Assembly (NCBI RefSeq): GCF_041956535.1
Contig: NW_027192197.1
Span: 135,829-199,828, forward strand
Reading direction: 5' to 3'
From: Calcarisporiella thermophila CBS 279.70
Taxonomy: Eukaryota; Fungi; Calcarisporiellomycota
DNA: 64,000 bases
A model generated the notes under the pieces. The model saw only the letters and a program-made list of their open reading frames with translations. It did no database searches and was not told where the DNA came from. How positions within the stretch are numbered: the first letter of the stretch is position 1; every line of letters starts with the position of its first letter. This document shows, piece by piece, positions 45,675-58,860 of this stretch. A program made the translations under genes and the position numbers.

Positions 45675-47519
45675 TTAATGCTGAGCCCAAGTGATCGTTT
45701 TGAGATCAATGCCCTCCTGCACCATTTCCCAGAGCGGGCTCATCTCCCGCAATCTGCTTACGTGAGTGAGAACACGCTCAACAACAAAATCTATTTCTTC
45801 CTCTGTCGTAAAGCGTCCAATTCCGAACCGAATGCTGCTATGGGCCATATCATCCTCGGCTCCCAGGGCACGTAGTACATAGGAGGGCTCGAGTGAGGCA
45901 GAGGTACATGCTGAACCAGAGGAGAGGGCAATGTCTTTGAGTGCCATTAGAAGGGATTCACCCTCGACATAGGCAAATGAAAGATTCACACAACCCGGGT
46001 AGCAGTTGCCACCTTCACCATTACGTACGACGTAAGGGAGTTTGCCGACGATACCATCAATTAGACGTTGGGATAGTGCAGAAATTCGTTTGTGATCATA
46101 CTATAAACGAAAAGGTAACAACAGTAAGAATATGAACTTTGTAGATTGGTCAAGCTTATGGCCTCAGCACCCCTGCACACAACTCATTGCAAAATCTCAC
46201 GACTATTATAGTTGTGATTTTGCTCGAATATGTAGTGAAGTATTATTGATATTCGCTTTTTTAGGCGAATTTTTCGTCATCGGCCAGACAAGAAAAATGA
46301 AACGTAAAATCTTACCTCCATCTCATTTTTCGCGAGACGGCAAGCCTCTCCAAACCCAACTGCAAGAGGAGTCGGCACTGTGCCTGAGCGTAGACCACGT
46401 TCTTGTCCGCCCCCAGAGATAATTGGTTCGAGCCGCACTCGAGGTCGACGTCGGACATATAGAGCTCCAATTCCCTTGGGGCCATAGATCTTGTGGCCCG
46501 ACAGAGACATAAGGTCAATGTTCATTGCATTAACATCCAGTGGGATCTTGCCGAGAGCTTGAGCTGCGTCAGTGTGTAAAAACACCTTATGTTTACGACA
46601 GATACGCCCAATCTCCTCTATGGGTTGAATGACACCGATCTCATTGTTCAAGGTCATCACAGAGACAAGGGCCGTCTCAGGTCTAATCGCTTCCTCCAAG
46701 ACCTTCAAATCGACCAAGCCATTCTTTTGAACGGGTAAATAGGTTACCTCGAAACCATCTTCTTGCAAATACCGACAGGAGTCAAGAACACATTTATGCT
46801 CCTAAAAAATATTAAGGTTATGAATATTGAATACTAGCATGGTAGCAAGAATATTTACCGTCTGTGTAGTGATAATATGATTCTTTTTACTACGATAAAA
46901 GCGGGCAACCCCCTTAATGCTCAAGTTATTTGCCTCCGTCGCGCCTGAAGTAAACACTATCTCTTTTGGATCCGCGCCAATAAGGTTGGCAATGTGCTAA
47001 ATTCCGGTTCAGAGTTAAATCTCTCTCCAAAAAAACAAATCAACCTAACCCACAGCACAAATCTAAAAGCTTACCTCTCTTGCATCGTCCACTGCCTTCT
47101 CACTCTCCCAACCATATTGATGGGTACGAGAATGTGGATTTCCGTAATACTGAGTCATGTAAGGCATCATAGCATCGAGAACTCGGGGATCCATAGGAGT
47201 TGTCGCCTGATAATCAAGATATATGGGACGACCAGTTTGCTTCACAACCTTTTCCTCGAAACCATGTTGATCTTCAGATATTGATACATGGATTAATAAT
47301 CAAAATACATTTAAGACTAGAGGACTCGCTGGTGCACTCACCTTGTGAAGGGGCTACGGTTGTGCTGCTCGATGCTATTTCAGCACCTCGATTTTGAGAT
47401 GCTGTAACATATCCCCGCGAAACAGCACTTGGCACAATGGGGAAGTATGTTTTGGGGTAGATCAGGGGACGATATCGAGAAGGCCGCAGAATGCTACGAA
47501 GAAGTGCTCGGCTTGACAT
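45675..47519 (-). CDS. NFS1: Mitochondrial cysteine desulfurase
   Basis: Presequence, [34 protein letters not shown] (PLP Lys) and [17 protein letters not shown]. Confidence 0.98.
46159..46286 (-). ncRNA. Intronic box C/D snoRNA, predicted U6 snRNA 2'-O-methylation guide
   Basis: Inside an oversized (~215 nt) NFS1 intron: terminal stem UGGCC/GGCCA, box C AUGACGA, box D CUGA, two internal hairpins, and antisense element UGUGCAGGGGU complementary to U6 GCCCCUGCACA. Confidence 0.8.
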
Positions 47520-55159: not shown

Positions 55160-56890
55160 CTATCTACATACGCTATATCCTGCTAGCTCTCCGCACGTTT
55201 GTCCTGCTGCACAGTCCTCATCCACTGAGCATAGACAGTAGTCCTCCAAAGCACAGTGCTTGATATCGGGGGGCATTGACACTTGCTCCGTGAATCCCAA
55301 GATCCGTCGGCCGTAATCGTTCATAAATACCCCGGTGGGATCGTAGCGCTCTACAATTTCGGCAAATCTCTCGAGGTTGGGGTAAGCCCTAGAAGCAACA
55401 GCCGCAGAAGAATAATAAAGCCCATTTTTTCCAAAATGAGGCCGCCCATCGTACTTATCTACCTGGAGAGAAATGGATAGAAGAAGTAAAAAAAAAAGAA
55501 ACAAGAACTAGTATTAGCGGTCGTCTAACTAAAACTTTTAACTTAAGGGATGAATATTTACAAGCATTTGCCCAATGGCCTGGTAAGTCGCCAATCCCAG
55601 TCGTGGGGTGTCTCTTGGATTAGCGCGCATAATGCTCGCGAAATCTATGTGTAGCGTCTCACGCCCGGTCTCTATCCCCATAAGTGAATCGGAAGCTGGT
55701 GAGAAGCGGAAATAAATCCCAATCAGGGGGAATGGAACAGGATTCAATTCAAAGATGGCGCGCATATCCTTAATTATATCCGCGAACCGATCCAGTGGAA
55801 GTGCCATTGCAATCTCGTCATCCCTAACCGGATATTTCGTGGGAGACCAGGGGCACTTGGTGCAGCGACTGGAGAGCATGTTGAATGAGTATCCAGTTGC
55901 CGGATTCATGACCTTCTTTCCATCCTCTGACAATATAGCCGGGCGCCCCAACATGTTTTTGTACAAGGATGACTCCGTCATATACTGAAAGAGAAACATT
56001 CCTCTGGTGCTATTAAGGGCCTGCAAATGCTCCACGAGCAGATGGACCACGCCGACTTTGAACTCGGCAACATCTGGGATGAGGTTAAAAATAGCATTGC
56101 CCGGCACGTCCAAGGAGGTATAGTTGCCCAAGGAAACCACAACTGACCGAGAGGAAGGGAACCACCACAGCTGAAAAAAGTCTGTCTTTCGAGCCAGCTC
56201 TAGTGCGACATCATTGAAGAGAATTTCTTCGGAGGAACGGTACAGCTGCACCGAAACCTTATACTGATTCACAAGAGGAAGATGTATTTCAACCACTACA
56301 CCCAATAGCCCAAGATGCACACGAAATGCACTGAAGTCTGAATATTCTCTATCGATGTACCGAATTTTTCCTTTAGCGTCTACAAAAATCATGCCAATTG
56401 CGAGTTCCGAAATAGTCGTGGGATGGAGTAGAGAACTTCCATGGGCGCCAGTCCCCATCGCGCCTCCTATAGTAATTCCTCCAAATGCTGGAAAGTGCTC
56501 CAGAGAATACCCATGTTCATTTAAGTTCTCAAGAAGATCCATCAATTCAATCCCCGCCCCAACTCTTGCTATTTTATTGCCGTCGACATCCTCTATTTTT
56601 ACCCATCGAAGATTCTTCATCACAATTGCAATTCCATCAGTGCAGATATTATCATTTGAAGAATGTCGACTTCCAATGGCCTTGACGGTGTGATTCTTGG
56701 CTATTGCTTCCTTGACAATGGCCTGTACCTCGCGCACACTCTTCGGGCGGAAGATGGCCGCGGCCCGACATCGGATCGTGCCTTTGTATGTACTATATTC
56801 CTCAAAGGTATAAGTGAGAGGTATAAGTGGTAAAAAGAGACAAAGAAGTATGGGTAATGAAGTTATAAGGGTATAATGCACTACTCGCAT
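55160..56890 (-). CDS. Secreted FAD-linked oxidase, L-gulonolactone oxidase (plant GULLO)-like, copy A
   Basis: Signal peptide, KAIGSRHS (covalent-FAD His region), TIGGAMGTGAHGSS, VHLGLLGVV, RPHFGKN and a Cys-rich tail HCALEDYCLCSVDEDC. One intron. Confidence 0.9.
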
Positions 56891-57163
56891 CGTGAAAGTA
56901 TTATTGTAATGTAAAAAAAAAAAAGGAATAGTTGGCATGTGTATTTTAAAAGCTCTTCTCAACTGAACATTGCATTCCTAATTTTAAGTTTAGGTAATAT
57001 GACCTTATTTGCATATTGAGCCACTCTAAGTAGGTTGTCCAACCTCTTTGAATCTTTCGAAATCGACTGGGCGATACAAGGGACCGCTGGATGAAGTTCA
57101 GAAGGCAACCATATATTGCATTATATTCATCGATGTTGATTAATTAAATCAGAGTGAATAGGA

Positions 57164-58860
57164 TTATTTACAGACGTTAGTACCCATCCATCGTCGGCAG
57201 CGCTGTCCTTTGGCACAGTCCGAATCTACAGAGCATACACAAAAATCTTCAAGCGCACAATGCTTCGTATTAGCGGGGAGTTGTACAGCATCAGTCAGCC
57301 CAAGGATTCGGCGCCCGAAATTATTCAAAAAGATCCCTTTGGGATCGTAGCGCGATACAATCTCTGCGAATTTCTTTGCATTGGGGTACTTGCTGAAAAA
57401 CATCTTCTTTGACGAGTAGTACAAGCCGTTCTTTCCGTGGTGAGCACGCCCATCTACCTTGTCCGCCTAGGTAATATATTTGGGAACATAAAATAGGTTA
57501 GAAAAGTGGACCCAGCAGAACGATTAGAGAACTAGGATCTAACACTTACAAGTAGTTGCGTGATGGCCTGGTATGATGCCAAGCCTAACCGCGGCTTATT
57601 GATTTCATCTCTGCGCATCACGCTAAGTAAATCGATGTGGACAGACTCGCGACCTGACTCCAAAGCTACTAGCGACTTCGCAGCCCTGGTAAACCTGAAA
57701 TTGATGCCATAGAGCGGGAAGGAAACAGGGGCTTCATTGTATACTGCTCGAATCGTATGCACCACCTCATCAAGCCGATGTATGTCAAAAGACAGAGCAA
57801 TGGCATTGTCTCTAACGGGTAGAGCCTTTGGCGTCCATGCACAGTTTCGACAACGGCTTACGAGGATTTTGTGAGAATATCCAGTACCAGGGTTCTTGGG
57901 GGTGACTCCATCCTCGGTGAGGACAAGAGGCTTTCCCGGAGCTCGACGATACAGCGACAGTTGAGTTATACCTTGATACAAGAACATATTCGGTTGGAGT
58001 TTTAAGGCTTGGCTAAGTTCAAACAGCGTGCTGTAGCCCGCGACCGCGAGGGGTGGAATGTCGGGAATCAAATTCATTTTAACGTCTCCATCTTCCTCGC
58101 AAGTGGTATAGTTTCCGGCTGACACGACAACCGAGCGGGTCGATGGGAACCACCAGAGTTGAAAGAAATCAATCTTGCGAGCCATTGCCAATGCCTGGCC
58201 GTTGAGGAGGATGTCCTCCGAAGCACGGTAGTTGTGGATCCTGATCTTGAACTGTGGAACGACAGGAAGTGTCACGTCTACTATGATCCCCAGTAGGCCA
58301 AGATGGACGCGAAAAGCAGCAAAATCGGGTGAATCTGCATTAATACGACGCAGTCTGCCGTTCGCGTCTACAAACGTCATACCGACAGCGAGCTCCGAGA
58401 GAGTGGCCGGGTGCAGAAGTGAGCTGCCATGTGCACCGGTGGCAATCGCACCTCCAACCGAGATGCCCCCAAACGAAGGAGCATGTTCTAGTGCAAGCCC
58501 TTTTGAGTGAAGTTTTGTCATCAAATCCAATATCTCTAGGCCTGCGCCTGCTGTCACCGTCATGTCGTTGTTGTATTTGACATTTCGAATATTTTCCATG
58601 AAAATAGCGATTCCTTCGGTGCAAAAATTGTCATTCCCAGAGTGCCGGCTGCCGACTGCTTTGACCGTTTGGTTTCTGCGCGCGGCTTCTCTGACAATGG
58701 TCTGGATTTCGGCCACAGTTTTTGGATAAAGGATGGCGGCGGCATTGCATTTAATGGTTCGCTTATACGTGGTGTATTGGACGCCACGCGCAGTAGATGC
58801 TAATAAAATAATGAGTGAAAAGATAAGTAATGAGGGGAAGGGGAGCCGTAACAGCTTCAT
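57164..58860 (-). CDS. Secreted FAD-linked oxidase, GULLO-like, copy B (tandem paralogue)
   Basis: KAVGSRHS, SVGGAIATGAHGSS, RAHHGKN and HCALEDFCVCSVDSDC. The single intron is at the same position as in copy A. Confidence 0.9.

Follow-up and report, generated by a model that had tools for sequence, protein, structure and literature searches.

The NFS1 gene of the early-diverging fungus Calcarisporiella thermophila (phylum Calcarisporiellomycota) very probably hosts a genuine intron-encoded box C/D snoRNA that would guide 2'-O-methylation of the third C in the CCCC tract of U6 snRNA. The candidate lies on the minus strand of the window, that is, the whole 64,000-nt stretch of DNA that we analyzed. 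Its predicted box C/D anatomy, its complementarity to the organism's own U6, and its deep conservation can be read in the DNA itself. The predicted RNA represents a new, widely conserved family of fungal box C/D snoRNAs, within a known functional class. U6 forms the catalytic center of the spliceosome, and the cluster of ribose methylations in its internal stem-loop is conserved from fission yeast to humans. The coordinates of the gene, the intron, and the elements of the RNA are given in Table 1.

Table 1. Features of the NFS1 locus and of the predicted snoRNA (window positions)
Feature	Position	Strand	Remarks
NFS1 (mitochondrial cysteine desulfurase)	45675..47519	(-)	at least 5 exons; from ORFs, tblastn, and the exon-4 match
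Host intron	46101..46315	(-)	215 nt, phase 0, GUAAG...UAUAG
Predicted box C/D snoRNA	46159..46286	(-)	~128 nt with terminal stem; same RNA in L002, L010, L012, and 15 metagenome loci
Terminal stem, 5' strand UGGCC	46282..46286	(-)	pairs with GGCCA at 46159-46163
Box C AUGACGA	46274..46280	(-)	variant: C at position 5
Hairpin AUUCGC-loop-GCGAAU	46251..46270	(-)	directly after box C, the usual place of a D' guide
D'-like box UCGA	46224..46227	(-)	inside conserved NNGAGY; our alignment reading
Internal hairpin GCAAAAUC...GAUUUUGC	46189..46223	(-)	between D' and C'
C'-like box UGAGUU	46181..46186	(-)	4 nt before the guide
Antisense guide UGUGCAGGGGU	46169..46179	(-)	11 nt; position 5 upstream of box D is G at 46172
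Box D CUGA	46164..46167	(-)	same in every relative reached through protein
Terminal stem, 3' strand GGCCA	46159..46163	(-)	5-bp stem with UGGCC

Anatomy of the predicted snoRNA in its NFS1 intron

The translated exons are those of a typical mitochondrial cysteine desulfurase (NFS1/IscS, Pfam Aminotran_5). Homology searches were run one exon at a time. Exon 4 matched representatives of the Aminotran_5 family at 7.7e-79, and a fungal full-length NFS1 (P0008) used as a tblastn query was covered at the locus over residues 100 to 510. A long ORF close to the gene shows 100% identity to an annotated C. thermophila protein. The host intron sits between ...AKNEME and YDHKRIS... of the protein. A first-pass annotation of the sequence had remarked on the unusual length of this intron (~215 nt), and the comparison bears this out, because NFS1 introns 2 and 3, the others measured, are 78 and 57 nt long. 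An intron at the same position, with an identical exon 4/exon 5 junction, was found in all fungal NFS1 loci that we fetched. Exon 4 was used as a HMMER query, and its best match as the query of a word-index search; this returned many short proteins in which exon 4 continues as read-through into the next intron. The abundance of these read-through proteins indicates that the intron position is widely shared.

Read from 46286 down to 46159, in the sense orientation relative to NFS1, the minus strand has the order UGGCC-G-AUGACGA ... AAUGAGUUG-UGUGCAGGGGUG-CUGA-GGCCA. Here UGUGCAGGGGUG (46179-46168) is the guide plus one spacer base and abuts box D. Boxes C and D with a k-turn, and a terminal helix that joins them, are the hallmarks of the box C/D class, and both are present. 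The antisense element also has the form typical of the class, which is 10 to 21 nt ending 1 or 2 nt before box D or D'. The k-turn geometry is exact (stem UGGCC / GAU / GA-CGA ... CU-GA / GGCCA): the three-nucleotide bulge GAU is followed by tandem G.A/A.G pairs contributed by box C and box D, and then by C.U and G-C. The sole departure from the RUGAUGA consensus is a C in place of U at the U.U pair position of box C (UGACGA). The predicted folding energy of the isolated RNA, -34.5 kcal/mol, is lower than that of every one of 200 dinucleotide shuffles, whose mean is -24 (z = -3.1).

The stem, box C, and box D that the first-pass annotation placed on the minus strand of this intron were all found there, and so were its two internal hairpins, AUUCGC/GCGAAU and GCAAAAUC/GAUUUUGC. 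Its assignment to the box C/D architecture stands as far as the boxes and the stem are concerned. It needs amending for box C, which is the variant UGACGA, though a variant that recurs in relatives.

Predicted target in U6

A single U6 gene was detected in the assembly (G000:C30:253305-253417, Rfam U6 at 78.9 bits). It reads AUGGCCCCUGCACAAGG, in the longer context ...AGCAUGGCCCCUGCACAAGGAUGACAC..., and the target that the first-pass annotation had expected is therefore present in the organism's own U6. Duplexes of the 18 nt before box D with U6, 18S, and 25S were sought, and only those with a pair at the fifth position upstream of box D (D+5) were accepted. The guide can form 11 contiguous pairs with GCCCCUGCACA of U6, 10 of them Watson-Crick and one G-U, through guide positions 2 to 12. 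The D+5 rule then picks the third C of CCCC in GGCCCCUG as the predicted site. This is the same cytosine that had been proposed from the window, and working out the register confirmed it. Counting along the human and S. pombe U6 sequences, we take this site to be the equivalent of human C62 and S. pombe C56.

Methylation of this tract is well documented in other organisms. In human U6, the methylated positions include C60, C62, and C63, and S. pombe and plants have kept many of the human sites (PMC5855946). In S. pombe, C55 to C57 are methylated (PMC10484740). S. cerevisiae U6 carries no 2'-O-methyl groups (PMC5855946), so U6 ribose methylation is not universal in fungi. Together with the pairing in C. 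thermophila, the register supports reading the RNA as a guide for the C62 equivalent.

From these features we infer accumulation of the RNA, assembly of a snoRNP, and a methyl group on U6, by the following route. The snoRNA would be transcribed within the NFS1 pre-mRNA. Once the intron has been spliced out and debranched, exonucleases would trim it as far as the snoRNP core, and the remaining RNA would be shielded by the C/D k-turn together with the 5-bp terminal stem. Snu13, Nop56, Nop58, and fibrillarin would assemble at the k-turn. The guide upstream of box D would pair with U6 over the 5' strand and the loop of the internal stem-loop, and fibrillarin would methylate the ribose of the U6 nucleotide that faces the fifth guide position.

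Conservation and alternative explanations

Three distinct relatives in which the intron is complete (L002, L010, and L012) were reached only through similarity to the NFS1 exon-4 protein (~82% identity), and the motif was not used to find them. A further locus, L014, is truncated where its contig ends. All three relatives have, in the same NFS1 intron, a box C, a C' box, UGUGCAGGGGU, a 1-nt spacer, and CUGA. Their box C sequences are GUGACGA, GUGAUGA, and GUGACGA, respectively. Each has a hairpin right after box C, of another sequence than in C. thermophila (CGUGC(G/C)...GCACG), and a D'-like NNGAGC. Variants of the D'-like motif in relatives are CAGAGC, UGGAGC, AUGAGC, GAGAGC, and UCGAGU. The terminal stems differ and nevertheless pair (UCUCC/GGAGA, GUUUGC/GCAAGC, and CCC/GGG plus CUG/CAG), so that, measured against UGGCC/GGCCA, pairs have changed on both sides. 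The predicted RNAs range from ~128 to 172 nt across the four species. Measured from where box D ends, the 3' splice site is 63 nt away in C. thermophila and 68, 71, and 70 nt away in the three relatives. Processing of intronic snoRNAs depends on their position in the intron (Hirose and Steitz 2001, as cited in PMC2780460).

The 11-nt guide is the longest word common to these four introns and the only shared word of more than 6 nt. In 300 shuffles of the introns, no shared word was longer than 6 nt. A search of the four introns for a second conserved antisense block found none. The UGA of the C' box is invariant and always lies 4 to 5 nt before the guide, which is independent evidence in L002, L010, and L012; in the metagenome loci described below, this spacing is partly built into the search pattern. 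The first-pass annotation had asked for the boxes and the guide to be conserved in related fungi, and they are, in the same intron of all three. For the relatives, complementarity of the guide to U6 is assumed from the near-universal U6 sequence.

To cover more fungi, JGI metagenome contigs were scanned for the reverse complement of UGA-N(4-5)-UGUGCAGGGGUK-CUGA. This gave 27 loci, 15 of which lie between homologues of NFS1 exon 4 and exon 5 that are 72 to 76% identical to the window. These 15 collapse to 11 distinct sequences on GC-rich, intron-dense fungal contigs, and box C is found 110 to 157 nt upstream of the pattern match in each. Invariance of the guide among the 15 follows from the search, and what counts as evidence is their location and their other motifs. 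Box C is UGACGA in L002, L012, and L025, and UGAUGA, UGAUGU, or UGAUGG in other relatives. In an alignment of 15 sequences, the G and A of the UGA core of box C are invariant, and covariation in the terminal helix is 0.291, compared with 0.182 for shuffles; of 500 shuffles, 8 scored at least as high. The stem covaries in L002, L010, and L025, and ACCA/UGGU is among the stems of the relatives. Several metagenome RNAs are without the outer stem, and in three of these, L022, L028, and L033, the predicted fold has an inner GCACC/GGUGC helix beside the boxes instead. Across fungal phyla, this intron is home to a box C/D snoRNA, and the view in the first-pass annotation that NFS1 is an unexpected host has to be given up.

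We considered whether an AT-rich intron could by chance combine C-like and D-like words with an 11-mer that matches U6. The guide word by itself is not rare, since RCCCCTGCACA occurs 17 times in the genome and its reversed control 11 times. However, joined to box D, as UGCAGGGG-NN-CUGA, it is found only twice in the whole 28-Mb genome. The whole arrangement is also seen at this intron position in no fewer than 14 other distinct sequences. Shuffled introns share words of 6 nt at most. The rarity of the guide joined to box D in this genome, a fold better than that of all its shuffles, and the conservation of the arrangement in other fungi place the motif beyond chance. The comparative data already contradict a chance origin, to which we give hardly any credence.

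A decaying relic is a quite improbable reading as well. Under it, a former snoRNA would be left unprocessed or unassembled in C. thermophila owing to the variant box C, and it would be recognizable only by recent descent. The non-consensus UGACGA and the clear loss of the D' guide found in CD4 relatives (see below) would fit such a history. However, although the hosts have diverged by ~18 to 27% in a protein that is very conserved, and the introns are otherwise unalignable, the RNAs have kept the guide, box D, the GA cores of the boxes, a paired stem, and the spacing from the 3' splice site. The recurrence of UGACGA in L002, L012, and L025 argues that the variant is tolerated.

It is also improbable that the RNA is a real box C/D snoRNA whose main partner is something other than U6, such as the decoding-center region of 18S (CCUUUGUACACA), an mRNA, or the NFS1 pre-mRNA in its splicing, with the U6 match being secondary. 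Intronic snoRNAs reportedly can affect splicing of their host, and our scan did return a 12-bp duplex with 18S around position 1633, the best rRNA target. We rejected this target: its duplex depends on three G-U pairs, including one at D+5, the position to be modified, and it uses guide positions 13 and 14, flanking bases that differ in L002, L010, and L012. The guide 11-mer was absent from the rDNA contig. By contrast, the fit of the conserved core to U6 is exact and its register is that of a site methylated in other eukaryotes, and the introns are without a second conserved antisense block. A U6 guide is the reading that we carry forward.

Relation to CD4 and to known U6 guides

Four Pezizomycotina-like loci (L005, L007, L009, and L044) have another box C/D RNA in the same NFS1 intron. 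Their D' guide is ACAUGCAUGGCUUU-CUGA, followed by a hairpin of the CCGUGACAAGG type, and it matches N. crassa CD4. CD4 is an intron-encoded RNA that was cloned from cDNA and is the predicted guide for 18S-Cm49 (Liu et al. 2009, PMC2780460). The CD4-type sequence, as read in these Pezizomycotina-like contigs, occupies exactly the same NFS1 intron as the C. thermophila RNA. However, the predicted CD4 guide for 18S C49 lies at D', and the element on the D side of CD4 is decayed, whereas the C. thermophila RNA has a hairpin in the place of the D' guide and only the U6 guide. The CD4 D' guide (ACAUGCAUGGCUUU-CUGA) is absent from the C. thermophila NFS1-intron RNA. A CD4-type guide for 18S C49 was not found elsewhere in the C. 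thermophila genome, where the one other copy of the 12-mer outside the rDNA is boxless.

One locus, L045, bears both elements: the CD4 D' guide and, upstream of box D, ACAGCAGGGGUU-CUGA. This ACAGCAGGGGUU equals the U6 guide at 9 of 11 nt, in the same register. The D-side element of the other CD4-type RNAs, A(U/C)AGCA..., looks like a further decay of the U6-guide element. We infer that the CD4-type and C. thermophila RNAs are linked by descent, via an intermediate of the L045 kind, and not by common function. These sequences suggest a single NFS1-intron snoRNA lineage that was once a dual guide (18S-Cm49 from D' and U6 from D) and that lost different guides in different fungi. The U6 guide alone was probably kept in C. 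thermophila and its relatives, and the 18S guide alone in Pezizomycotina-like fungi. We put at about even chances the fuller history, in which the lineage has sat in the NFS1 intron since before the split between early-diverging fungi and Dikarya, with dual guides for 18S-Cm49 and the U6-Cm62 equivalent, of which different phyla later lost different ones.

If the dual-guide history is true, the family would be the long-sought guide for part of the CCC tract of fungal U6, and which lineages methylate that cytosine could be predicted from the distribution of the family among fungi. A guide so deeply conserved and so easily recognized may serve as a marker for the gain and loss of U6 modification in fungi. 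The association of the snoRNA with its host intron, steady across phyla, and the apparent turnover of guides inside a fixed host make the family a case for the study of snoRNA evolution.

The guide for C62 of human U6 is SNORD94 (PMC6894857, PMC6124571). Like the fungal RNA, it is a box C/D RNA that addresses the same U6 nucleotides, in the same register, and selects the same cytosine. However, its guide follows right after box C, on the D' side, as the published primer indicates (PMC6124571), whereas the fungal RNA would use the D guide. The statement in the first-pass annotation that the SNORD94 guide lies beside D' agrees with that primer. The two RNAs also differ in host gene and have no detectable sequence similarity, and the fungal RNA would be a functional analogue. 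The annotation had further looked to cmscan against Rfam for support. The run, against Rfam 15 and covering the window, the region, and 12 related loci, matched no family at gathering thresholds, any SNORD94 model in Rfam included, and relaxed settings gave only noise (E of at least 1.5).

Fungal guides for U6 are not unprecedented. S. pombe has snoZ30/mgU6-47 for A41 and sno530 for A64 (PMC10484740), and N. crassa has CD11 for U6-Am47 (PMC2780460). The main text of 'The fungal snoRNAome' gives family CD_54 a predicted D' guide to N. crassa U6-55; in our reading, the Nc CD54 D' guide GGGGCCAU-CAGA selects the first C, the equivalent of human C60. All four resemble the C. thermophila RNA as box C/D guides for fungal U6, and sno530 and CD_54 also act at the internal stem-loop, but they address other nucleotides and none addresses the third C.

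A fungal guide for the third C is absent from the literature that we searched. Porat et al. (2023) sought the snoRNA(s) for S. pombe C55 to C57 and identified no candidate (PMC10484740). The N. crassa snoRNA catalogue has no U6 guide for the third C (PMC2780460), and neither has the main text of 'The fungal snoRNAome', supplementary tables aside, which could list a CD_4 homologue with a U6 target. A screen in A. fumigatus yielded no guides to U1, U5, or U6. With A41/A47, A64, and a predicted first-C guide as the fungal U6 guides in this literature, the C. thermophila RNA is a concrete candidate for the third C.

Other candidates were considered and set aside. The N. crassa orphan CD55 (137 nt, intronic) is without a U6 guide and was rejected as a homologue. 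A search of the C. thermophila genome with RF00288 (snoZ30) gave no match, a result that says nothing on the presence or absence of that RNA. The second UGCAGGGG-NN-CUGA site of the genome (G000:C4:326447-326460) has a box C that is weak (UGAUAC) and lacks a stem, as would be expected of a chance match. The first-C guide GCAGGGGCCAT gave nine matches in the genome, none with credible boxes. One of these lies in a coding sequence with a GNDDAGAMGAW motif, and another is a bare 13-nt complement.

Variant forms of the NFS1-intron snoRNA

Judged by its sequence, the locus L045 is a link between the Neurospora crassa CD4 family and the family of U6-guide RNAs, as it carries both guides in the NFS1 intron (see the table). 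A second variant occupies the same intron in L004. Its boxes and stem are clean, and its D guide is GUUUCAGGGAAU, in which only CAGGG of the U6 guide is retained, in an unchanged register. This difference reflects either drift of the guide or a different U6 in the L004 organism.

In the GC-rich relatives, including L022, L028 and L033, GCAC(C) is conserved directly 3' of box C. This element is complementary to GGUGC, which comprises the last guide bases and the first base of box D. In the folds of six GC-rich relatives, GCAC(C) formed an inner closing helix in three (L022, L028 and L033). As modeled, this helix would mask part of the guide.

Positions and composition of the features discussed
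Feature	Position	Composition
Dual-guide NFS1-intron snoRNA	L045:2073-2285	D', 18S-Cm49 guide; D, U6 guide (9/11)
Box C/D RNA in the same NFS1 intron	L004:1847-2073 (ENA metagenome scaffold)	GUUCG-A-AUGAUGA ... CUGA-CGAAC
C. thermophila U6 gene	L001:1501-1630 (G000:C30:253305-253434)	
Further guide-like site	L056:240-262 (G000:C4:326447-326460)	UGCAGGGG-NN-CUGA
U6 complement	L052 (G000:C19:46853-46865)	Perfect 13-nt complement of U6 AUGGCCCCUGCAC
Tandem FAD-oxidase ORFs	Window 55538-58860	

U6-complementary sites away from NFS1

The L056 site is the sole further occurrence of its motif in the C. thermophila genome. It could form a 9-nt pairing with U6 in the same register. The only box C candidate is a poor UGAUAC about 80 nt upstream, and the site lacks a terminal stem. 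Therefore, this occurrence is probably due to chance. At L052, no recognizable C/D boxes adjoin the U6 complement.

Three metagenome contigs (L016, L039 and L021) share GUGCAGGGGUGCUGAUAAGUCCUUAG around the pattern match and differ in the sequence upstream; L016 and L039 are identical. No NFS1 homologue is present on these contigs. The UCCUUA that follows box D in L016 has a potential pairing partner, UAAGGA, about 150 nt upstream. One possible reading is that a non-fungal eukaryote encodes this element as a U6 guide with the same register.

The U6 gene and the FAD-oxidase ORFs

Downstream of its conserved core and before the terminal U-run, the C. thermophila U6 gene appears to contain an additional 3' hairpin, GCACAC-UUCG-GUGUGC. 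If present, this hairpin would bring the RNA to about 125 nt, which exceeds the Rfam consensus length.

C. thermophila VTP21DRAFT_10351 matches one of the tandem FAD-oxidase ORFs with 100% identity. Beyond C. thermophila, the best named homologues of this ORF are from springtails (Orchesella and Folsomia), ranking above those from other fungi.
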